Sequence record: NC_019411.1 | Reading direction: 5' to 3' (one strand) | DNA: 64,000 bases | Shown: piece by piece, positions 45,889 through 53,202 of the stretch | How the letters are laid out: each line of letters starts with the position of its first letter | Numbering within the stretch: position 1 is the first letter of the stretch | Notes under the pieces: model-generated | What the model was told of the DNA's origin: nothing | The model's database searches: none | Seen by the model: only the letters and a program-made list of their open reading frames with translations | Program-made: the position numbers and the translations under genes

Positions 45889-46665
45889 ATGGCGATCCAG
45901 AACCCCCATTCCACCACGCCCGGCACCATGCCGCACCTGACGCCCGGCGAGATCGGCGTCAACAAGGCCGACGACATCCTCTGGTTCCGCTCGCAGGGGC
46001 GCCGCGTGCCAATCATCCTGAGCGATCTTGACCGCGCCCCGCCGGCGGACGGCTATGTCGGCGCTCCCCTGACTCTGGTCGACGGCGCGCCGGCCTGGAA
46101 TGTCAAGCTCTTGCCGTCCTCGATCGTCTCCGGCGCGGTCAAGGTCGATCTCCCGCCCGCCGCCGGCCTGCACGCCGTGCCGAGCGTCCTGCTCCAGGGC
46201 CTGGGGGCCGATCGCGTCCTGGCGACCAATGATCTGGACCTCACCCCCTTCTATGTCCGCTCCGACTCCATCACCCTGACCCATCTGGCCTTCAGCGTGC
46301 GCTCGGCCGGCGCGCCGGCCATGCGCGTGGGGATCGTCGACAGCTTCGGCGTCGTCCAGGCCGACATCCTGGTCGCCGCGCCGGTCGTGGGCGCCAATGT
46401 CGTGGCCCTCTCGCCGGTCCTGACCCTCCAGCGCGGCGTCTACCGCACCATCCTGGCGACGACCGGGGCGGTGACGGTGGGGATCGCCACCGGCGCGCGC
46501 ATGGAACAGGGCTGGGACATCATCGCCGACGCGCCGTCGTTTATCCGGGGCTACAGCGGTAGCAAGAACACTGGCGGCGGCATCGGGAGCCTGCCAGCGC
46601 TCACCCCGCGCCGCGACCCCGCGCCGGGCCAGGATCACGCCGTCCTCCTGCGCTGGACGGCGTGA
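45889..46665 (+). CDS. Fibre-tip-like protein, paralogous to the C-terminus of the giant protein
   Basis: ATG 45889; LTPGEIGVN motif and TPFYV...LQRGVY domain. Confidence 0.65.
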   Translation: MAIQNPHSTTPGTMPHLTPGEIGVNKADDILWFRSQGRRVPIILSDLDRAPPADGYVGAPLTLVDGAPAWNVKLLPSSIVSGAVKVDLPPAAGLHAVPSVLLQGLGADRVLATNDLDLTPFYVRSDSITLTHLAFSVRSAGAPAMRVGIVDSFGVVQADILVAAPVVGANVVALSPVLTLQRGVYRTILATTGAVTVGIATGARMEQGWDIIADAPSFIRGYSGSKNTGGGIGSLPALTPRRDPAPGQDHAVLLRWTA

Positions 46666-46727
46666 ATCTTGACACTCGGTCGAAATGCGGTTAACCTGCG
46701 CGCTCATCTGGAGTTTCGAGCGCCATC

Positions 46728-46994
46728 ATGGCCGAGCTTGTCCGCATCTATCACCCCGAGACGAACGAGCCGTTCGACGTGATCCCGTCGACCGCCGAAC
46801 GTCTGCGCCTGGGTCAAGGTCTGGACGGTCTGGTGTGGCTCTCGCAGCCCTTCTCCCGCGCCGCTGCCGAAGAGCCGGCGCCGGAAGCCCCCAAGGGGCG
46901 AGGTCGTAAGCGCGTCGCCGCGCCCGTCTCGGACGAAGCCGAAGACGATGGCTGGCGTGACGCGCCGACCGAGGACGCTTCCGAAGCCGCGTAA
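46728..46994 (+). CDS. Hypothetical acidic protein
   Basis: GGAG SD; KGRGRKR tail resembles 32592..32975. Confidence 0.7.
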   Translation: MAELVRIYHPETNEPFDVIPSTAERLRLGQGLDGLVWLSQPFSRAAAEEPAPEAPKGRGRKRVAAPVSDEAEDDGWRDAPTEDASEAA

Positions 46995-47038
46995 GGCGCT
47001 TCCCCGTCCACTCTGCTGAAATTCGGTCTCAGTCCCAT

Positions 47039-47114
47039 GTCGGTCTAGCTCATGGGGTAGAGCGGCGGTCTCCAAAACCGCGCGTGGCAGGTTCGAGTCC
47101 TGCGACCGGCGCCA
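47039..47114 (+). tRNA. trnW: tRNA-Trp (CCA)
   Basis: Cloverleaf, loop CTCCAAA, TTCGA T-loop, CCA end. Confidence 0.9.
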
Positions 47115-47119
47115 TTTCC

Positions 47120-47194
47120 GCGTCCATCGTATATGGGTTATTGCTTCGCGTTGCCAACGCGACGAACCGGGTTCGAGTCCCGGTGGACGCTCCA
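47120..47194 (+). tRNA. trnG: tRNA-Gly (GCC)
   Basis: Loop TTGCCAA, CCA end. Confidence 0.9.
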
Positions 47195-47200
47195 ATCCAG

Positions 47201-47274
47201 GCGGATATAGCTCAAAGGGAGAGCTACTGCCTTCCAAGCAGAAGATGCGGGTTCGAGCCCCGCTATCCGCTCCA
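47201..47274 (+). tRNA. trnG: tRNA-Gly (TCC)
   Basis: Loop CTTCCAA, CCA end. Confidence 0.9.
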
Positions 47275-47295
47275 AAATTTTCTTCCACGACAAGC

Positions 47296-47324
47296 TTGAC
47301 AGCCGCCGAGATTTGTGAGAGCCT
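47296..47324 (+). promoter_or_regulatory. Sigma70-type promoter of the Glu/Asp tRNA unit
   Basis: TTGACA-N17-GAGCCT; shares TTGTGAGAGCCT with the 48092 promoter. Confidence 0.6.
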
Positions 47325-47333
47325 TCAACCATT

Positions 47334-47396
47334 ATGACGCACCTCCTGACCCGTTACGAACGCGAGGCCACCGGCCTCGATACCACCACCGCCTAA
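47334..47396 (+). CDS. Putative leader peptide MTHLLTRYEREATGLDTTTA
   Basis: ATG near the predicted +1; stop lies inside a hairpin followed by TTTT (47373-47423). Confidence 0.5.
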   Translation: MTHLLTRYEREATGLDTTTA

Positions 47397-47430
47397 AAGC
47401 GGTTCTGGTAACCGAGGCCTTTTGTCATGT

Positions 47431-47508
47431 GGCCCGGTCGTCTAGCGGTTTGCAGGATTCGTGACTTTCAATCACGAGAGCGGAGTTCGAGTCTCCGTCG
47501 GGCCTCCA
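47431..47508 (+). tRNA. trnE: tRNA-Glu (TTC)
   Basis: Loop CTTTCAA, CCA end. Confidence 0.9.
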
Positions 47509-47531
47509 CCCCCAAAGCCTCCTCTGAGCTT

Positions 47532-47606
47532 GGTGCGTTCGTATATCGGTCAATACTCCGGATTGTCGATCCGGCAAGAGGGGTTCGATTCCCCTACGCA
47601 CCGCCA
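47532..47606 (+). tRNA. trnD: tRNA-Asp (GTC)
   Basis: Loop TTGTCGA, CCA end. Confidence 0.9.
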
Positions 47607-47617
47607 GGGCTTTCCCA

Positions 47618-47776
47618 ATGCCGCTTCAGTCGGGTTCGAGCGACGCCGTCGTCTCGCACAACATCGCCAAGCTGATCGACGAGGGCTACTCCAGGGAGCA
47701 GGCCGTGGCGATCGCTCTCTCCCAGGCGCGCAAGCCGCGCCGTCCGAAGGTCTCGCGCGGCTCGCGCCGGCGCTGA
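47618..47776 (+). CDS. Small basic phage protein (MPL..GSS..VVS.NI..LI.EGY...[10 protein letters not shown] type)
   Basis: Hand-translated 52 aa; recognisable small phage family. Confidence 0.7.
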
Positions 47777-47846
47777 CCTCGCCTCGCTAAAGCACCCCAG
47801 GTTCCCGGCCTCGTCGTGAGGCCGCCTGCGGTCGCGCGAGGCTTCC

Positions 47847-48071
47847 ATGACCTTTCTTGATCTTCGTTCGCAGTCGAGCACCGCGCTCCTGCGCCATGTG
47901 TCTTCCCGATCCCCGATGGCGGAAGCGGCTCGCACCGAGTTGCTGACCCGAGGCCTCGTCCCGCTCCTCACGCGGCACAACGGCTGGCGCCTCGCCCCGA
48001 GCGAGCCCTTTCCGCAGCATCTCATCCCGCGCCCCGATCCGCTCGCGAGGTTCACGTGGCGGGCGGGATGA
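47847..48071 (+). CDS. Hypothetical protein
   Basis: GAGG SD, 74 aa. Confidence 0.5.
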   Translation: MTFLDLRSQSSTALLRHVSSRSPMAEAARTELLTRGLVPLLTRHNGWRLAPSEPFPQHLIPRPDPLARFTWRAG

Positions 48072-48091
48072 AGATTTTTCTCACGCCGTGC

Positions 48092-48120
48092 TTGACATCC
48101 GTCTGAAGTTGTGAGAGCCT
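48092..48120 (+). promoter_or_regulatory. Sigma70-type promoter of the P/T/K/L/H/A/S tRNA operon
   Basis: TTGACA-N17-GAGCCT. Confidence 0.65.
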
Positions 48121-48214
48121 GTCCAACGTCACGGATCACGACACTCCTCGGAGTGCAAAAGCGCGATCCTTCGTTATTCCCTGGACGCCAGCGGGCGTCC
48201 GTTCGAGAGCCATC

Positions 48215-48352
48215 ATGTTCGCCTTGTCGCATAACAGCCTGAGCACGAAAGCCGCCTCCCCGGCGTCGCTTTCGCTTGCCCTGCTGGCGACGGCCACGAA
48301 GCCCTCGACCAAGCCGACCACCTCGGCCTCGCACTCGACGGATCACCTCTAA
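48215..48352 (+). CDS. Attenuator leader peptide MFALSHNSLSTKAASPASLSLALLATATKPSTKPTTSASHSTDHL
   Basis: 41 of 45 residues are P, T, K, L, H, A or S, the amino acids of the 14 downstream tRNAs. Confidence 0.8.
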   Translation: MFALSHNSLSTKAASPASLSLALLATATKPSTKPTTSASHSTDHL

Positions 48353-48417
48353 GGTATCTCGTCTCGGGTGCAGGCCTTGGAGCCGCACCCGCTACCAACA
48401 TCCTGTTGACCTAGCGC

Positions 48418-48454
48418 AAGGCGGCTCCCAGCAAGGAGACCGCCTTTTCTTTTT
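48418..48454 (+). terminator. Attenuator terminator ahead of tRNA-Pro
   Basis: AAGGCGG-CTCC / GGAG-A-CCGCCTT followed by TTCTTTTT. Confidence 0.85.
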
Positions 48455-48466
48455 CGCGTTGATCAT

Positions 48467-48542
48467 CGGGGTGTAGCTCAGTCGGTAGAGCGCTCGGTTC
48501 GGGACCGAGAGGCCGTGGGTTCGAGTCCCGCCACCCAGACCA
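48467..48542 (+). tRNA. trnP: tRNA-Pro (CGG)
   Basis: Loop TTCGGGA; G2-A71 mismatch; CCA end. Confidence 0.85.
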
Positions 48543-48549
48543 ACGCCAT

Positions 48550-48624
48550 CGGGATGTAGCTCAGCGGTAGAGCGCGCGGCTGGGGGCCGCGAGGCCGCAG
48601 GTTCGAGACCTGCCACCCCGACCA
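48550..48624 (+). tRNA. trnP: tRNA-Pro (GGG)
   Basis: Loop CTGGGGG; CCA end. Confidence 0.85.
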
Positions 48625-48629
48625 ACAAT

Positions 48630-48702
48630 GCTGCTGCGCCTGGATCGGCGCCGGCCCCTTGGTATGGGGAAGTAGAAGGTTCAATTCCTTCCGGCAGCAC
48701 CA
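48630..48702 (+). tRNA. Atypical tRNA-Thr (GGT)
   Basis: GCTGCTG/CGGCAGC acceptor with G1-C72 and C2-G71; CCCC-TTGGTAT-GGGG arm; compact D region; ACC codons in the leader. Confidence 0.6.
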
Positions 48703-48707
48703 ACAAC

Positions 48708-48777
48708 GCCGATGCCTCTAGGAGGACACGTCTTTCGTAATGACGTCAGGTGGGTGCGATCCCCACTTTCGGCTCCA
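48708..48777 (+). tRNA. Atypical tRNA-Thr (CGT)
   Basis: 70 nt; loop TTCGTAA; T-loop TGCGATC; very short D arm; ACG codons in the leader. Confidence 0.55.
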
Positions 48778-48812
48778 TCAAGATGATCAAGGAGAGATCA
48801 GACGAAACAAAT

Positions 48813-48899
48813 GGATGTGTCACCTCAGTGGCGAGAGGACCGGGCTCTTAATCCGGCAGCGAAAGCTCATCGTGGGTTCGAGTCCCACCACATCCTCCA
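48813..48899 (+). tRNA. trnK: tRNA-Lys (CTT) with long variable arm
   Basis: Loop CTCTTAA; variable arm AGC-GAAA-GCT; 87 nt. Confidence 0.85.
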
Positions 48900-48906
48900 A
48901 CAATAT

Positions 48907-48996
48907 GCACGAGTGACCCGAGCGGCGAAGGGCGTCGACTTTTAATCGACTGGGCGTCCAGCCTCACCGAGGGTTCGAGTCCCTCCTCGTGCTCCA
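48907..48996 (+). tRNA. trnK: tRNA-Lys (TTT) with long variable arm
   Basis: Loop CTTTTAA; variable arm GGGC-GTCCA-GCCT; 90 nt. Confidence 0.85.
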
Positions 48997-49002
48997 AGAT
49001 GT

Positions 49003-49088
49003 GCGAAAGTGGCGGAACAAGGTAGACGCACCGGTCTCAGGTACCGGCGGCTTCGGTCATGAGGGTTCGAGTCCCTCCTTTCGTACCA
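49003..49088 (+). tRNA. trnL: tRNA-Leu (CAG)
   Basis: Class II fold, loop CTCAGGT. Confidence 0.9.
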
Positions 49089-49095
49089 ACGACAT

Positions 49096-49180
49096 GCCGG
49101 TCTGGCGGAAATGGCAGACGCAGTGGCTTCAAGTCCCACCGCCTTCGGGCGTCCCGGTTCGATGCCGGGGACCGGCACCA
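49096..49180 (+). tRNA. trnL: tRNA-Leu (CAA)
   Basis: Class II fold, loop TTCAAGT. Confidence 0.9.
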
Positions 49181-49186
49181 CCATGA

Positions 49187-49274
49187 TGCGAAGTGGCGGA
49201 ATTTGGTAGACGCACCGGCATGAGAGGCCGGCGCCCTTCGGGGCGTGAGGGTTCGAGTCCCTTCTTCGCGACCA
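49187..49274 (+). tRNA. trnL: tRNA-Leu (GAG)
   Basis: Class II fold, loop ATGAGAG. Confidence 0.85.
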
Positions 49275-49287
49275 AAGACGAGATTAT

Positions 49288-49359
49288 GCCGGCCGGCGCA
49301 GGCGCGCGGGGGAGGTTGTGTCCCTCCTTGGCTCAGTTCGATACTGAGGGTCGGTTCCA
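49288..49359 (+). tRNA. Atypical tRNA-His (GTG)
   Basis: GCCGGCC/GGTCGGT acceptor; GGAGG-TTGTGTC-CCTCC arm; CTCAG-TTCGATA-CTGAG T-arm; poor D arm; CAT/CAC codons in the leader. Confidence 0.55.
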
Positions 49360-49364
49360 GTTAC

Positions 49365-49435
49365 GGGGTATGCGCAGGGCGCAGGCATCCTTTGCAAGGA
49401 AGTCGGGGTGGGTTCGAGTCCCACATACTCCACCA
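49365..49435 (+). tRNA. Atypical tRNA-Ala (TGC)
   Basis: G3-U70 and A73 Ala identity elements; loop TTTGCAA; short D arm. Confidence 0.65.
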
Positions 49436-49439
49436 ACAC

Positions 49440-49527
49440 GGTAGGTTGGCTGAGAGGCCGAAGGCGCCCGTTTCGAAAACGGGAGAACCGCAAGGTTCCG
49501 TGGGTTCGAATCCCACACCTACCTCCA
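49440..49527 (+). tRNA. trnS: tRNA-Ser (CGA)
   Basis: Class II fold, loop TTCGAAA. Confidence 0.9.
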
Positions 49528-49531
49528 ACAT

Positions 49532-49619
49532 GGATGTATGGCTGAGAGGCCGAAGGCGCCCGCTTGGAAAGCGGGTGAACCGCAAGGTTCCGTAGGTTCG
49601 AATCCTACTGCATCCGCCA
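49532..49619 (+). tRNA. trnS: tRNA-Ser (GGA)
   Basis: Class II fold, loop TTGGAAA. Confidence 0.9.
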
Positions 49620-49623
49620 ACAT

Positions 49624-49710
49624 GGTAGGTGGTTCCGGCCTGGGGCCGGACCCGGTTGCTAACCGGCCGGAGCCGCAAGGCTTGGGGTTCGATTCCTCCT
49701 CCTACCGCCA
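49624..49710 (+). tRNA. trnS: tRNA-Ser (GCT), probable 8/4 fold with extended D stem
   Basis: Loop TTGCTAA; GGTAGGTG/CTCCTACC acceptor; GGGG/CCTC T stem; TCCGGC/GCCGGA D stem. Confidence 0.8.
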
Positions 49711-49750
49711 ACATCTCCCAGGCCTATAGCCTGGGAGGGTTTGGACATAA

Positions 49751-50239
49751 TCAGGCGTGGTTCGGAAACTCGGCGATCTCAATCCCAGGCGAGGCGCTGA
49801 CGACCAACCAGTAAGCTCCGGTCCAGCGCAAGACAACCGCAGGCGGATAGGCCGGGGCCAAGGGGGTGAGCACGGATGCCGGATCGGCGACGATAGAATC
49901 GGGCAACGGAACGATCAAGGCTGGACCGGTTTTCGCCGCCGCAGGATCACCATAACCGGAAGCGAAGACGGGGGTCTGAACGCCAGCGTCAGCCAATATG
50001 CCGAGGATAATAGGCATAGCTAAGGGCGCACTCTGCGGAGCATGTGTCCCACGAGAGAATGTGATGAAAAGTTCGTCTCCTACTTCCTTCGCGGCAGTAA
50101 GGAATCCATATCTTGCGGCATAGTCGGCTGCTCCGAATTCAGGAGAGACTTGGCTTACGAGATGGACGCGCTGCTCTCCGTTCGGGTTGACGATTTGAAT
50201 CGAAGCCTCAATACCTCGGTTCATCGTGATTGCGGTCAT
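49751..50239 (-). CDS. Hypothetical protein inserted antisense in the tRNA array
   Basis: 162 aa; GGAG SD; lower GC3 than its neighbours. Confidence 0.65.
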   Translation of the reverse strand: MTAITMNRGIEASIQIVNPNGEQRVHLVSQVSPEFGAADYAARYGFLTAAKEVGDELFITFSRGTHAPQSAPLAMPIILGILADAGVQTPVFASGYGDPAAAKTGPALIVPLPDSIVADPASVLTPLAPAYPPAVVLRWTGAYWLVVSASPGIEIAEFPNHA

Positions 50240-50313
50240 AAGTATCTCCAGCGGCTGGATGCCGCAGTGCGATACCTAAAGTCGAGTTTTCGACGTGTCC
50301 AGCCCCTTTGAAG

Positions 50314-50560
50314 TTGACACCCGCGACGCGGCCTGTCATACGTCACGACAGAGCGAACACCCCCCGGCCGGGTTTGTTGTCATACCGGGTCGTCACGCCC
50401 CGTCGGGGCTCTAGTAGCTCTTCGTGTGGAGTTTTCCGCCTCCCTCCCAGACAAGGAGGCGGACCCAACCAACATCGCGATCTCCCGTGATCGTCGGCGA
50501 CGGGCGCCGTCAGAGACCTTTGCCTGCGCGGCTCCGCTGCGGCCCTGGTCTCGTCCCGAC
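50314..50560 (+). ncRNA. Candidate structured ncRNA unit
   Basis: TTGACA promoter at 50314, several hairpins, no ATG ORF, CCA-like ends at 50471 and 50560. Confidence 0.35.
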
Positions 50561-50581
50561 CAAATTTTTTCGTCGTGGTGC

Positions 50582-50610
50582 TTGACACTGCGAAACTGTT
50601 CTGCTAGGGT
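50582..50610 (+). promoter_or_regulatory. Sigma70-type promoter of the Y/F/V/I/Q/N/R tRNA operon (leaderless mRNA)
   Basis: TTGACA-N17-TAGGGT (GCTAGGGT); leader ATG at the predicted +1 (50618). Confidence 0.7.
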
Positions 50611-50617
50611 TCACGTC

Positions 50618-50716
50618 ATGAGCAAGACCTATCGTCAATTTGTGCGCCAGATTCAGGTCGTCCGGAATATCCGGGCGGGCCGCTCGCGCATGGCTGACGA
50701 AGGGTTCAGGGACTAG
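50618..50716 (+). CDS. Attenuator leader peptide MSKTYRQFVRQIQVVRNIRAGRSRMADEGFRD
   Basis: Codons 5-19 are exclusively Y, R, Q, F, V, I, N, the amino acids of the 12 downstream tRNAs. Confidence 0.8.
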   Translation: MSKTYRQFVRQIQVVRNIRAGRSRMADEGFRD

Positions 50717-50746
50717 GTCCCACACCACGCTCAACCAGCTTTCGAG

Positions 50747-50783
50747 AGGCCCGCCTGGAAACCCCAGGCGGGCCTTTTCTTTT
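50747..50783 (+). terminator. Attenuator terminator ahead of tRNA-Tyr
   Basis: AGGCCCGCCTGG/CCAGGCGGGCCT followed by TTTCTTTT. Confidence 0.9.
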
Positions 50784-50816
50784 CCACTTTCGATCACGGA
50801 GATCACCAACAGACAC

Positions 50817-50901
50817 GGATGCTTAAAGCTGGAGGGCTCCAGCCGGGGACTGTAAATCCCCTCTCTTCGGAGGAGTGGTTCGATCCCACAAGCATCCACC
50901 A
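50817..50901 (+). tRNA. trnY: tRNA-Tyr (GTA), probable 8/4 fold with 6-bp D stem
   Basis: GGATGCTT/AAGCATCC acceptor; GTGG/CCAC T stem; GCTGGA/TCCAGC D stem; loop CTGTAAA. Confidence 0.8.
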
Positions 50902-50906
50902 ACCAC

Positions 50907-50982
50907 GGACTCGTAGCTCAGCAGGTAGAGCGCCGGCTTGAAACCCCGGAGGTCGGAGGTTCGATTCCTCCCGTTTCCACCA
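50907..50982 (+). tRNA. trnF: tRNA-Phe (GAA)
   Basis: Loop TTGAAAC; two acceptor mismatches. Confidence 0.85.
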
Positions 50983-50987
50983 ACAAC

Positions 50988-51063
50988 GCCCGATGAGCCA
51001 GATGGGAAGGCGCCGCCGTGACATGGCGGGATTGAGAAGGTTCGATTCCTTCATCAGGCACCA
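50988..51063 (+). tRNA. trnV: tRNA-Val (GAC)
   Basis: Loop GTGACAT. Confidence 0.85.
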
Positions 51064-51065
51064 AT

Positions 51066-51141
51066 GCAAGTGTAGCTCAGTCGGTAGAGCAGCGGACCGA
51101 TAATCCGCCTGTCCCTGGTTCGAGTCCAGGCATTTGCACCA
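51066..51141 (+). tRNA. trnI: tRNA-Ile (GAT), C33 variant
   Basis: Loop CCGATAA. Confidence 0.85.
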
Positions 51142-51148
51142 ATTCTGA

Positions 51149-51223
51149 TGTGGCATAGCTCAGGGGTAGAGCGCGCGCTTGATAAGCGTGAGGTCGGGGG
51201 TTCGAAGCCCTCTGCCACTACCA
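51149..51223 (+). tRNA. trnI: tRNA-Ile (GAT)
   Basis: Loop TTGATAA; U1-U72 mismatch. Confidence 0.85.
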
Positions 51224-51256
51224 GTTTCCAGGCCGGCGGAGATGCGCCGAACCTGA

Positions 51257-51332
51257 TGGCGTTTAGCATAGTGGGAGTGCAGGGGTGTCACATACCTCGA
51301 TCGAACTGGTTCGATTCCAGTAACGCCAACCA
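51257..51332 (+). tRNA. trnV: tRNA-Val (CAC)
   Basis: Loop GTCACAT. Confidence 0.85.
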
Positions 51333-51337
51333 AATGT

Positions 51338-51411
51338 TGAGGGTTCGTCTAACGGTAGGACGGCTGGGTCTGGTCCAGCTAATCTAGGTTCGAGTCCTAG
51401 CCCCTCATCCA
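51338..51411 (+). tRNA. trnQ: tRNA-Gln (CTG)
   Basis: Loop GTCTGGT. Confidence 0.85.
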
Positions 51412-51418
51412 AGTTTGT

Positions 51419-51492
51419 TCTCGGGTGGTCTAATGGTAAGACATCTGGTTTTGGTCCAGAGGATTGGGGTTCGATTCCTTGGCCGAGAACCA
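51419..51492 (+). tRNA. trnQ: tRNA-Gln (TTG)
   Basis: Loop TTTTGGT. Confidence 0.85.
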
Positions 51493-51507
51493 ACTACTTG
51501 AGTTTAT

Positions 51508-51582
51508 TCCAGTCAATGCACAAGGTGTGCAGCGGCACTGTTAATGCCTGTGAGCCCGGTTCGATTCCGGGGTCTGGAGCCA
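51508..51582 (+). tRNA. trnN: tRNA-Asn (GTT)
   Basis: Loop CTGTTAA. Confidence 0.85.
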
Positions 51583-51608
51583 ACACGCCGGCCTCGGCCG
51601 GCACATGC

Positions 51609-51691
51609 GCCCTGGTAACCGAGGGGGATTACGAATCCCTTAGTCGTAGCAGGAGTTGAAAAGGGTGGTTCGAATCCACTCCAGGGTGCCA
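51609..51691 (+). tRNA. D-armless tRNA-like RNA, anticodon ACG (Arg)
   Basis: GCCCTGG/CCAGGGT acceptor; GGGA-TTACGAA-TCCC arm; about 24-nt extra region; canonical T-arm; CCA end. Confidence 0.5.
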
Positions 51692-51698
51692 AATTCAT

Positions 51699-51781
51699 AG
51701 CGCGCAGGCCGAGCAGGATCATCGTCAGGCGTCGCCCTCCGAAGGCGAAGAGGCCCGGTTCGAGTCCGGGGCGCGCTGCCA
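51699..51781 (+). tRNA. trnR: tRNA-Arg (CCG) with enlarged D loop
   Basis: Loop CTCCGAA; 17-nt D loop. Confidence 0.8.
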
Positions 51782-51784
51782 TCC

Positions 51785-51862
51785 GCGCGGGTAGCTCAAT
51801 GGACCCAGAGCAGCCGTCTTCTACACGGTGGGTTGGGGGTTCGAGTCCCTCCCCGCGCGCCA
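51785..51862 (+). tRNA. trnR: tRNA-Arg (TCT)
   Basis: Loop CTTCTAC. Confidence 0.9.
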
Positions 51863-51865
51863 AAC

Positions 51866-52200
51866 TTGACGGGCGATGTCGAATCGCCCAGGATCAAACC
51901 GTAGGCCTCTTCCCGTGGGCCTGACATATACGTCCGCCAGCACTGCCATTCCGCGTCAGCGGGCGCGGCGCGAGGAGGGTTAACCCCTCGTTGTCGTGCA
52001 GCCGGGTGGTGTGGACGTCCCAACGTGATCTTCGAACGCGGCATGCCGTGGAGGGGTGATCGGATGGCGAACCAAGGGACACCTTCTTATCCTGGCCTGG
52101 GCCGCATGGGGCTCCGCTGGGAGAAACGGCCTGACCCGACCGGAGGTGCGTCCAGGATGCCGGCTCTCCATGCCAGAGTCTCGTGGACTAGGGTCTGAAA
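51866..52200 (+). ncRNA. Candidate structured ncRNA at the end of the tRNA operon
   Basis: About 330 nt with several hairpins, a long-range GGCATG/CATGCC stem and no convincing ORF. Confidence 0.35.
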
Positions 52201-52219
52201 TTTTTCTGGCGCTGATGTG

Positions 52220-52351
52220 TTGACACTCCTCGGAGGCTCGTCTAAAACCAGCAGCGTCAGAGCGGCGTTGGACCACGAGGTCCGCCGCGAGCTTCTGCGT
52301 TGTCGTCAGGAACGGCCCGCCAGCAATCCCGCTGGCGGGTCGTTTCGTTTT
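52220..52351 (+). ncRNA. Candidate ~95-nt sRNA (promoter, hairpin, terminator)
   Basis: TTGACA-N17-TAAAAC; GCGGC..GGACC/GGTCC..GCCGC hairpin; terminator AACGGCCCGCCAGC/GCTGGCGGGTCGTT followed by TCGTTTT. Confidence 0.45.
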
Positions 52352-52471
52352 GGGCGCAATGCGACGTTCAGTCCAACCATGGGTAGTGTCATGAATCTTG
52401 ACTTTCGGCGCTTATTCCGGTAGCTTTCCCGACATCAGCAAACGCTCACAAGTCGGGGACCGAGAGCCGTC

Positions 52472-52888
52472 ATGTCGCAAGACCACAACGGCTCGTCCTC
52501 GGGCCAAGAACGCATCTACCAGAAACTGGATGAGCTTGGCTCCATGCACGCGCGCACCCGTGAAGATATTGCCCGCATCCAGGAGATGATGCGAGCGGTC
52601 GGTTCGTCGCAGGAGCGGATCGAAAAGCGCCAGGACCATTTCGAGCGCGAAATCTGGCGTGAGATGGAAGACCGCGCCGCGCGCACGAGCGCCCAACTCG
52701 ACGAGATCAAGAGCCACACCAACCTGCGCATCGAGGAGATCGAGGCCAAGGTCGACACGATCCGCGAGGAACGGATCGCCGAGAAGGCCCAGTGGCGCGG
52801 CCCCGAGAAGGCCATCGCCGCCCTGGTCGCCGTCGCCGGGGCCATCGCCGCCTTCGCCACGATCCTCACTTTCCTGAAGGGACACTAG
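52472..52888 (+). CDS. Coiled-coil protein with C-terminal membrane anchor (holin-like/XhlA-like topology)
   Basis: Heptad-rich body; AIAALVAVAGAIAAFATILTFL tail; function not established. Confidence 0.6.
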   Translation: MSQDHNGSSSGQERIYQKLDELGSMHARTREDIARIQEMMRAVGSSQERIEKRQDHFEREIWREMEDRAARTSAQLDEIKSHTNLRIEEIEAKVDTIREERIAEKAQWRGPEKAIAALVAVAGAIAAFATILTFLKGH

Positions 52889-52995
52889 GACTTATAGTCA
52901 AGCTTGGGTGCCTGCGGCCAGAAGTCGCGCTTCTTGACACCCGATCTGGGCCGGCATAACCATAGGGCCATCGTTCCTGGGTGGAGTTTTCCCTA

Positions 52996-53202
52996 ATGGC
53001 TGTCGCGCTTACTGTCGTCTCGGTTGAGACCGAATCTACCATCCAAGGTGTTGATCCCGACGCGGCGCATGTCCGCCTGATCGAGGTCCTGCATACCGCC
53101 GCAGAAGCGGGTCTTGGGGAAATGACGTTGGAAGTCAAAGCGGAGATCGCGGCGCTGCTCCAGCAGGCGTCCGTGGAACTCTCCCACTGCCGGCCGGTGT
53201 AG
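52996..53202 (+). CDS. Hypothetical protein
   Basis: GGAG SD. Confidence 0.55.
   Translation: MAVALTVVSVETESTIQGVDPDAAHVRLIEVLHTAAEAGLGEMTLEVKAEIAALLQQASVELSHCRPV

Follow-up and report, generated by a model that had tools for sequence, protein, structure and literature searches.

The window analysed here, 64,000 nucleotides in length, corresponds to bases 1-64000 of Caulobacter phage CcrSwift. In this window, a leader unit is located just 5' of a cluster of 12 tRNA genes on the plus strand (50817..51862), encoding Tyr-GTA, Phe-GAA, Val-GAC, two Ile-GAT, Val-CAC, Gln-CTG, Gln-TTG, Asn-GTT, Arg-ACG, Arg-CCG and Arg-TCT. Default ARAGORN missed the genes for Tyr, Arg-ACG and Arg-CCG and called the Asn gene as Ile(aat) with a shifted anticodon. 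Employing relaxed ARAGORN, annotated homologues and folding, we placed Tyr-GTA at 50817-50901, Asn-GTT at 51508-51582, Arg-ACG at 51609-51691 and Arg-CCG at about 51699-51781, all on the plus strand. The leader unit is conserved in 18 phages of Dolichocephalovirinae, representing 7 clades, and the Tyr/Phe/Val/Ile/Gln/Asn/Arg identities follow the leader terminator in all 7.

The promoter proposed in the initial annotation was found where it had been described: TTGACA (50582-50587), a spacer of 17 nt, TAGGGT (50605-50610, inside GCTAGGGT) and, 7 nt further downstream, the ATG at 50618, all on the plus strand. The pattern TTGACA-N17-TANNNT occurs 4 times in the window, always on the plus strand, against an expectation of 0.03. 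By the E. coli consensus the -10 hexamer is weak (3/6 matches to TATAAT), and a generic promoter/terminator scan called neither the leader promoter nor the leader terminator. In the 18 phages, TTGAC is invariant and lies 30 (31) nt 5' of the ATG (TTGAC-N30/31-ATG in 18/18), while the spacer sequence itself drifts; a -10-like hexamer is positioned 7 nt 5' of the ATG in every clade (TAGGGT, TAGCTT, TATAAG, TAAAAG, TAAATG, TAGACA or GACACA). Directly upstream of the promoter, a hairpin followed by T6 (50546..50570, plus strand), reported as a terminator-like site in the generic scan, probably insulates the leader unit from upstream transcription. With this geometry, host RNA polymerase would start at or next to the A of the ATG and produce a leaderless mRNA. 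The claim that such mRNAs are common in Caulobacter agrees with the literature, in which they are frequent and well translated (PMC4117421).

From this ATG, a putative leaderless leader ORF of 32 codons (50618..50716, plus strand) encodes MSKTYRQFVRQIQVVRNIRAGRSRMADEGFRD; it is open, with 31-32 codons, in 18/18 phages, and thus supplies the short ORF expected of a ribosome-mediated attenuator. Codons 5-19 (50630..50674) specify only Y, R, Q, F, V, I and N, as the initial annotation had noted, and this set is exactly that of the 12 downstream tRNAs. The run is the longest of its kind in the window in six frames, the runners-up (13 and 12 codons) both being Arg-rich; in-set runs of at least 15 codons are expected 0.0015 times, and 200 block shuffles produced none longer than 12 codons. 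In-set codons, cognate to the downstream tRNAs, account for 15/15 in Swift, 14-15/15 in all clades and 14/14 in Rogue, in which one codon is absent. Codons 5-14 (50630-50659), the effective stall window in the masking model described below, read Y R Q F V R Q I Q V and include several rare synonymous codons. The rarity suspected at first is real: the share of the synonymous family is 8% for TTT, 7% for ATT, 11% for CGT, 15% for AAT and 21% for CAA. The match between these codons and the downstream anticodons also holds, but it is a near-automatic consequence of amino-acid membership, and the point made about AGG at codon 31 and Arg(TCT) had to be dropped, the codon being CGG in phiCbK and Ccr10. 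The 32-aa product showed no match to Pfam or PHROG at E <= 1, a result of little weight for so short a query.

An alignment with the leaders of related phages, proposed earlier as a check, showed that spacing, frame, stop position, in-set composition and r2:r3 complementarity (see below) persist across 7 clades despite sequence drift. The phiCbK counterpart of the leader lies at 51305-51503 of JX100813. The stretch from +1 to the terminator is retained in all Dolichocephalovirinae searched, always directly 5' of the same array. Indels inside the ORF are of 3 nt only, and those after it are of 1-4 nt. In codons 5-14, entropy was 0.79 at the third position versus 0.33 and 0.33 at positions 1 and 2. 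In the last 8 codons, every codon position varies; nevertheless, the stop codon stays 30-34 nt 5' of the terminator. In the sensor columns, where clades differ by changes such as F to N, Q to R and I to Y, alternative residues belong to the set in 13/16 cases versus 8/27 in the remaining peptide, and only 23% of single-base nonsynonymous neighbours are in set (binomial P about 1e-6, uncorrected for phylogeny). Outside the subfamily, blastn with the tRNA array returned only single-tRNA similarities. A 21-base pattern of invariant positions retrieved only the seven known isolates from IMG/VR and nothing from metagenomes; a structural pattern (r2...r3...r4 plus TTTT) likewise retrieved only known isolates from IMG/VR. 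The latter gave 33 matches in metagenomes, which we rejected as ordinary gene ends with terminators and no leader ORF; one of them had a downstream tRNA, a lone tRNA-Lys.

Three mutually exclusive helices can be drawn in the leader transcript, and each retains its pairing through compensatory changes. Between the ORF and the tRNA genes there is an intrinsic terminator (50748..50783, plus strand; annotated in GenBank), with an 11-bp G+C-rich stem (50748-50774, -25.7 kcal/mol) and a 5-nt loop followed by TTTTCTTTT. It is 99.3% paired across the phages, with compensatory change at 3 pairs; phiCbK and RB23 have only a short U-tract. The antiterminator is formed by r2 (50671..50686, CCGGGCGGGCCGCTCG), whose first 11 bases match the terminator 3' arm CCAGGCGGGCC at 10/11, and r3 (50743..50758), which serves either as the antiterminator 3' strand or as the terminator 5' arm, so that the two helices exclude each other; both strands lie on the plus strand. 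As the initial annotation had claimed, 15/16 positions pair, one G-U included. The r2:r3 duplex of Swift has a free energy of -32.6 kcal/mol, compared to -18.3 +/- 2.6 in 1000 shuffles, none of which was as good. Over 15/15 phages the duplex ranges from -29 to -33 kcal/mol (0/1000 shuffles as good), r3 in the same place is the best partner of r2, and 90.6% of positions are paired with compensatory change at 3 pairs.

The third helix, an anti-antiterminator (1:2; 50626..50706, plus strand) absent from the earlier reading, pairs the sensor codons (50626-50650) with 50683-50706 and encloses a 9-bp inner hairpin (50658-50666/50670-50678) that holds the 5' half of r2. The helix overlaps the sensor codons and, on folding, is predicted to sequester r2 when no ribosome is stalled. 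Its architecture appears in the minimum-free-energy folds of 13/15 phages (exceptions, BL57 and SC), with z-scores of -4.0, -2.7 and -2.3. RNAalifold on a MAFFT alignment recovered the inner hairpin and the terminator but not the outer 1:2 stem, because in Colossus- and Brevundimonas-type phages its register is offset by 3 nt. When the outer stem was scored with explicit structures in two registers, 87% of cells were paired versus 33-50% in slid controls, with compensatory change at 5-6 pairs. With this clade-dependent register, 1:2 is less strongly supported than the other two helices. We also found a small hairpin missed before, GGGAC-UAG-GUCCC (50709..50721, plus strand), with the stop codon in its loop. 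A hairpin at or beside the stop codon is present in the minimum-free-energy folds of 14/15 phages with differing sequences, the BL9 hairpin lying downstream of the stop. Within 46000-53000, Rfam gave no leader family (Trp_leader, His_leader, Thr_leader, Leu_leader, Phe_leader and others) and no T-box at E <= 1. The only Rfam overlap was a sub-threshold Hrs10 match on the opposite strand.

To place a ribosome on these structures, we used a masking model that is thermodynamic, not kinetic, with the A site positioned codon by codon. A transcript ending 5' of r4, the terminator 3' arm, was computed to fold into the antiterminator. With the A site on codons 5-14 of Swift, the advantage of the terminator decreased from ~10-16 to ~1-5 kcal/mol, and it became negative for at least one masked codon in 10/14 phages other than Swift. 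Masking at codon 15 or beyond, or at the stop, produced no such shift toward the antiterminator. In the model, then, a stall frees r2, with an absent or terminating ribosome not favouring 2:3, for codons 5-14 only (15/15 phages). The proposal that a stalled ribosome leaves the antiterminator strand free would hold for these codons but not for codons 15-19, at which the ribosome would cover that strand. At equilibrium the terminator state wins at every ribosome position in Swift, so the model has to invoke co-transcriptional kinetics. For SC and BL9, terminator and antiterminator come out approximately equal in stability even without a ribosome.

The leader is thus likely a trp-type, leaderless, ribosome-mediated transcription attenuator ahead of a tRNA operon, feeding decoding speed back onto tRNA transcription. 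The initial annotation, in which a leaderless leader peptide mirrored the downstream tRNAs and an antiterminator competed with the terminator, gained strong comparative evidence from the 7 clades; from the parts, their conservation, covariation and geometry, we infer where transcription starts, that the ORF is translated and that read-through is regulated. A 70S ribosome would translate the 32-codon leader, in which codons 5-14 can all be read by tRNA species encoded downstream. If the ribosome is absent or fast, the sensor codons and the inner hairpin would hold r2 and its 3' flank in 1:2; r3 would then pair with r4, the terminator would form and transcription would stop at about 50783. Slow decoding at any sensor codon would leave a stalled ribosome on the 5' strand of 1:2 and r2 free to capture r3 before r4 is made. 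No terminator would form, and polymerase would enter the 12 tRNA genes. The new tRNAs would speed up decoding and restore termination, a net negative feedback that would match tRNA supply to demand. Amino-acid starvation would not be relieved by extra tRNA, so the physiological signal is uncertain.

The attenuator may be real and translated and yet report general translation or coupling capacity, such as ribosome availability after host takeover or a (p)ppGpp-slowed polymerase, instead of the supply of these tRNAs, the in-set codons being a by-product of history or RNA constraints. We consider this unlikely. With seven amino acids, mostly represented by 1-4 codons each, the sensor would be broad, not sharp, and codons 15-19 are also in set, yet sited where a stalled ribosome masks r2 and, in the model, unable to signal. 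Stems and an A/U-rich loop do dictate part of the composition; in codons 15-19 these RNA constraints explain it in part, CGG/GTC lying in stems and N, I, F or Y resulting from the A/U-rich loop. Against this reading, 6/7 alternative states in codons 5-14 are in set even where the residues are chemically unrelated (F to N or Q to R), and rare synonymous codons such as ATT are invariant among the phages. In addition, the amino acids of Leader A (described below) overlap with none of these seven and correspond, independently, to the separate tRNA cluster behind it.

It has also to be considered that the ORF is the gene of a small, basic, functional protein and that promoter and terminator serve this gene, the tRNAs being transcribed by constitutive leak-through and the r2 complementarity having no regulatory role. 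In some deposited records (RBC57, S2L and the Bambus group), the ORF does carry a hypothetical-protein annotation, and the N-terminal half of the peptide is fairly conserved. The C-terminal third, in contrast, varies freely at all codon positions, and no Pfam or PHROG family was found; a peptide that folds or binds a partner would not be expected to undergo replacements like F to N, I to N or Y, and R to Q. Over codons 15-24, nucleotide conservation tracks base pairing, not amino acids (R/L/H at codon 22, R/H/C at codon 24), and the r2:r3 pairing shows covariation; moreover, no promoter was seen in the 33 nt from the terminator to tRNA-Tyr. A protein-coding role in place of attenuation is thus very improbable. 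Covariation by itself would suit an untranslated RNA switch with tRNA or some other molecule as its direct ligand, or a stable sRNA set free by termination, the ORF being incidental; among other alphaproteobacteria, an action in trans of terminated attenuator RNAs is reported for rnTrpL of Sinorhizobium (PMC6614838). The fixed promoter-ATG distance, the conserved frame and stop position, the 3-nt-only indels and the third-position periodicity all speak for translation, and neither a T-box nor any other Rfam model matched the leader strand at E <= 1. We regard an untranslated element as highly improbable, although the terminated leader could have a role in trans alongside attenuation.

As a putative translated attenuator, the CcrSwift leader resembles E. 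coli trpL, hisL, pheL and leuL, in which a short ORF with regulatory codons is followed by helices 1:2, 2:3 and 3:4, the last being the intrinsic terminator; as in trpL, a stall in region 1 would free region 2. Unlike in these systems, the leader mRNA would be leaderless and the sensor consists of 10-15 single codons for seven amino acids in place of a run for one amino acid. The stop codon lies between r2 and r3, not on r2 as in trpL, which leaves the terminating ribosome off r2 and makes blocking of 2:3 by a fast ribosome less evident. The targets are tRNAs, not biosynthetic enzymes: classical attenuators control amino-acid biosynthesis, transport or synthetase genes, and since those here are 12 tRNA genes, the leader is classified as a new variant outside every described leader family. 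Several amino acids per leader peptide are known from the ilvGMEDA (Ile/Val/Leu) and thr (Thr/Ile) leaders, where any stall leads to read-through; those, however, sense 2-3 amino acids of one branched pathway, whereas the seven of CcrSwift are unrelated and defined only by the tRNA genes that follow. Genes of the translation apparatus are attenuated according to the state of tRNA by the pheST leader (pheM) and by the T-box leaders of aminoacyl-tRNA synthetase genes; these target synthetases, and T-boxes, with no match here, bind uncharged tRNA directly without a ribosome.

For tRNA genes themselves, growth-rate control at the promoter is the textbook mode, and we know of no tRNA operon under the control of a leader peptide whose own codons serve as the test of decoding. 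A Phe-rich attenuator of the E. coli tRNA-Phe genes was considered as a precedent and discarded: upstream of MG1655 pheV there is a promoter only and no such ORF. In the literature searched on phiCbK, phage tRNA, attenuation and leader peptides, no control of tRNA genes of this kind was described. The phiCbK genome paper reported only tRNAs and terminators, and an RNA-seq paper on phiCbK infection (PMC10688885) did not discuss the tRNAs. For Deinococcus deserti, leaderless leader peptides have been postulated (PMC4007540); transcription there begins, as predicted here, right at the AUG of a short regulatory ORF 5' of a terminator. The CcrSwift leader differs in preceding a tRNA array in a phage.

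Two further leaders lie in the window, 5' of the other tRNA clusters. In Leader A (48215-48444), the ORF gp079 (48215-48352) has a 35-codon run confined to {P,T,K,L,H,A,S}. The 13 tRNAs behind the Leader A terminator serve precisely these seven amino acids; the runner-up run within this set in the window has 17 codons. The third leader (47334-47419), a short ORF with a hairpin 5' of tRNA-Glu and tRNA-Asp, contains Glu and Asp codons, with a weak match to its cluster. Tentatively, the tRNA genes (18 amino acids) in three clusters, each behind its own leader-peptide attenuator, might constitute an on-demand tRNA replacement system that raises whichever cluster is limiting according to codon-specific ribosome speed. 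Such a system could be triggered when phage codon demand outruns the host tRNAs, or when these are destroyed, be it by anticodon nucleases of the host or through the shut-off that the phage itself imposes on the host. If confirmed, attenuation of this type would constitute direct feedback from codon-specific translation speed to tRNA supply and would make large phage tRNA arrays regulated modules, not passive cargo. It would also bear on the debate over whether phage tRNAs compensate for codon usage or escape tRNA-targeting host defences, and would offer synthetic biology a natural, compact multi-codon sensor of decoding speed. By implication, the annotation of these phages misses regulatory small ORFs as well as several non-canonical tRNAs. 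Between the terminator and tRNA-Tyr, there is also a conserved GGAGATC motif (50798..50804, plus strand); Swift has no ATG there, and in most other genera the motif is the SD of a mini-ORF of 4-5 codons.

The observation of Leader B, a predicted leader ORF with RNA hairpins before the 12-tRNA array (50817-51862) of Caulobacter phage CcrSwift (Swift; the window is JX100809 bases 1-64000, with identical coordinates), is confirmed, far beyond chance. All elements listed in the initial annotation (promoter, ORF, sensor codons, complementary segments and terminator) were found in the sequence. On the plus strand the order is TTGACA (50582), a 17-nt spacer, TAGGGT, a further 7 nt and then ATG 50618, which opens an ORF of 32 codons with codons 5-19, the putative sensor, reading YRQFVRQIQVVRNIR; the terminator after the ORF is an 11-bp hairpin with TTTTCTTTT. 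GenBank has no annotation for Leader B: the record gives a predicted terminator at 50748-50774, then tRNA genes only. A generic promoter/terminator scan flagged neither the promoter nor the terminator of Leader B.

Using low-stringency blastn, we found 70-100% identity from ~50610 to ~50808 (predicted +1 to just beyond the terminator) and no conservation of the flanking sequence. The stretch is kept in every Dolichocephalovirinae genus in our collection, the 280-350-kb Caulobacter and Brevundimonas phages among them, and 17 homologous loci were compared with Swift (18 phages). In every clade, the terminator is followed by tRNAs for Tyr, Phe, Val, Ile, Gln, Asn and Arg. There are four copies of TTGACA-N17-TANNNT in the window, always on the plus strand, against 0.03 expected, and in 18/18 phages TTGAC followed by A, C or G lies 30 (31) nt upstream of an ATG opening a 31-32-codon ORF. 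The length of the promoter-to-ATG spacer is kept in the 18 phages and its sequence is not, as predicted if transcription starts on the A of the ATG. We infer from the sequence that the mRNA is leaderless and translated; Caulobacter has 375 leaderless mRNAs, translated equally to leadered ones (PMC4117421). Indels are of 3 nt only within the ORF and of 1-4 nt downstream of it. In codons 5-14, entropy was 0.79 at the third position versus 0.33 and 0.33 at the first two; codons 25-32 vary freely at all three positions, and despite this the stop codon is kept 30-34 nt upstream of the terminator stem.

The 15 sensor codons are drawn solely from the set {Y,F,V,I,Q,N,R}, which makes up 30% of phage codons. 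This run is the longest across the six frames of the window (expected number, 0.0015), and in 200 shuffles no in-set run exceeded 12 codons. Eight of the 15 are minority synonymous codons. The sensor peptide differs among clades (YRNNVRQIRVRQFNL in Colossus, YRQNVQNIRVVRFYR in Gurke, YRQNVQNIRVVRFNR in Bajun and YRQFVRQIQFVRVNR in SC), and 13 of the 16 alternative residues across the sensor columns are in-set, compared to 8/27 in the remaining columns. Among the codons reached from those of Swift by one nonsynonymous base change, only 23% are in-set (binomial P ~1e-6, uncorrected for phylogeny). Changes of the type TTT to AAC (F to N) fit poorly with a folded peptide and are expected if the tRNA reading the codon is what counts. 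A hairpin stem and A/U-rich loop contain codons 15-19, so that R, V, N, I, F and Y would be favoured there anyway; when the count was limited to codons 5-14, 6/7 alternatives were still in-set. As judged from these comparisons, the composition of the sensor is under selection.

Three mutually exclusive helices are conserved: a terminator (3:4), an antiterminator (2:3) and an anti-antiterminator (1:2). The terminator is paired in 99.3% of cells, with compensatory changes at three pairs. In the antiterminator, r2 (50671-50686) is complementary to r3 (50743-50758) at 15/16 positions; 90.6% of cells are paired (28-60% in slid controls), again with compensatory changes at three pairs, and in SC and BL9 r2, r3 and r4 (the 3' arm of the terminator) changed in concert (G to A, C to U, G to A). 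In 15/15 phages, r3 pairs better with r2 than with any other part of the leader (-29 to -33 kcal/mol), and 0/1000 dinucleotide shuffles matched the r2:r3 energy in each of the 15. The initial annotation had overlooked 1:2. In minimum-free-energy folds of 13/15 phages, the outer stem of 1:2 pairs the Tyr-Arg...Val-Arg codons with the 20 nt immediately 3' of r2, and a 9-bp inner hairpin (50658-50678) contains the 5' half of r2. This helix is 87% paired versus 33-50% in slid controls, with compensatory changes at 5-6 pairs and folding z-scores of -4.0, -2.7 and -2.3. The outer stem was not recovered by RNAalifold, because its register is shifted by 3 nt in some clades. A small hairpin with the stop codon in or beside its loop appeared in 14/15 folds, with unrelated sequences.

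A transcript truncated before r4 folds as the antiterminator, whereas the full Swift transcript folds as 1:2 plus terminator, which beats the antiterminator state by 15.6 kcal/mol. We modelled a ribosome by masking a 28-nt footprint at each A-site codon in turn. With the A site on codons 5-14 of Swift, the advantage of the terminator fell to 1.4-5.3 kcal/mol; with the ribosome at the stop codon it was at least 10 kcal/mol. The same codon window was found in 15/15 phages, and in 10 of the 14 phages besides Swift there was at least one codon at which the antiterminator became the more stable state. In this model, codons 5-14 can signal as proposed for the whole sensor, but from codon 15 onward the footprint masks r2 itself. 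Conservation, in-set composition and covarying helices support the attenuator interpretation. With the ribosome absent or fast, 1:2 and 3:4 would form and transcription would terminate; a stall on the regulatory codons would favour 2:3 and read-through into the tRNA genes. Since the tRNAs produced are those reading the sensor, the loop would be a negative feedback on decoding speed.

The window contains 24 tRNAs in three groups according to ARAGORN; membership, set by relaxed thresholds, annotated homologues and folding, is Trp, Gly, Gly, then Glu, Asp (group 1), Pro x2, Thr, Lys x2, Leu x3, His, Ala, Ser x3 (group 2) and Tyr, Phe, Val, Ile x2, Val, Gln x2, Asn, Arg x3 (group 3). An independent parallel to Leader B is Leader A (gp079, 48215-48352, MFALSHNSLSTKAASPASLSLALLATATKPSTKPTTSASHSTDHL), in which 41/45 residues belong to {P,T,K,L,H,A,S}, 35 of them consecutively (the second-longest such run in the window is 17). 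The 13 tRNAs (48467-49710) after its terminator (48420-48444) carry exactly these seven amino acids. The 5' arm of that terminator has a complement at ~48378-48386. Leader A is kept in Rogue and BL10, and BL9 has the same composition in a different sequence. The sets of Leaders A and B share no amino acid and each fits its own cluster, which argues against a generic compositional artefact.

Leader B would share its working principle with classical leader-peptide attenuators, its stall/no-stall scheme being trp logic, and is conceptually nearest to the multivalent ilv and thr leaders and the pheST leader. The defining difference lies in its target, tRNA genes, along with a sensor covering seven amino acids and a predicted leaderless start. 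For leader peptides of the leaderless kind, D. deserti offers a proposed precedent (PMC4007540). Leader B matched no Rfam leader or T-box model, its peptide matched no protein family, and the literature searched contained no account of tRNA genes controlled in this way, either in phages or in cells. Leader B is probably a known mechanism in a new form, with tRNA genes as target. E. coli pheV was considered as a precedent; its sequence does not bear this out.

At 47296-47419, TTGACA and a -10-like box (GAGCCT) precede a 20-codon ORF (MTHLLTRYEREATGLDTTTA, 47334-47396) that ends within a long hairpin/terminator just 5' of tRNA-Glu and tRNA-Asp. The ORF is identical in Rogue and BL10, with a variant, MTFSTFLFREIGSASRDTTAS, in BL9; ORF and hairpin may be a third attenuator. 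A promoter-like TTGACA-N11-TTGTGAGAGCCT occurs before this leader (47296-47324) and before Leader A (48092-48120), and a related TGTGAGACACA is found at the Leader B promoter in Colossus and PW. Adjoining the Leader B promoter upstream is an unannotated ~220-nt unit (50314-50572), bounded by a promoter-like TTGACA (50314) and a hairpin with T6 (50546-50570). It is 81-100% conserved only in Shapirovirus and Poindextervirus, has a folding z-score of -1.8 and no Rfam match, and may be a small RNA. A minus-strand 162-codon ORF (49751-50239), also unannotated in GenBank, lies between the second tRNA cluster and the Leader B region.

Seven tRNA genes, Tyr, Asn, Arg-ACG, Arg-CCG, Thr, His and Ser-GCT (50817-50901, 51508-51582, 51609-51691, 51699-51781, 48627-48702, 49284-49375 and 49624-49710, respectively), were missed by ARAGORN at default settings, by the Rfam tRNA model or by both, and the GenBank record lacks them; their D or variable regions are enlarged. 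The 2012 genome paper described Tyr and Thr tRNAs as absent from these phages. The array-final tRNA has anticodon TCT (Arg) in Swift (51785-51862) and others, and TCC, called Gly, in phiCbK (L002 2747-2824), apparently through a change of one anticodon base in a tRNA that is otherwise of the Arg type. Between the terminator and tRNA-Tyr, a GGAGATC motif (50798-50804) is conserved (also at loci L003, L007, L008, L009, L010, L011, L012, L014 and L018). In most genera it is the Shine-Dalgarno sequence of a 4-5-codon mini-ORF (MNNGG, MTGGD or MTGN, then stop), whose ATG is lost in Swift and phiCbK with the motif still there. In Colossus-type and Brevundimonas phages (L007, L008, L010-L013, L018), the leader and tRNA array are preceded at close range by a peptide deformylase gene, which is the immediate neighbour in Bajun and 1-4 genes away in the others, forming a small neighbourhood of translation-related genes.
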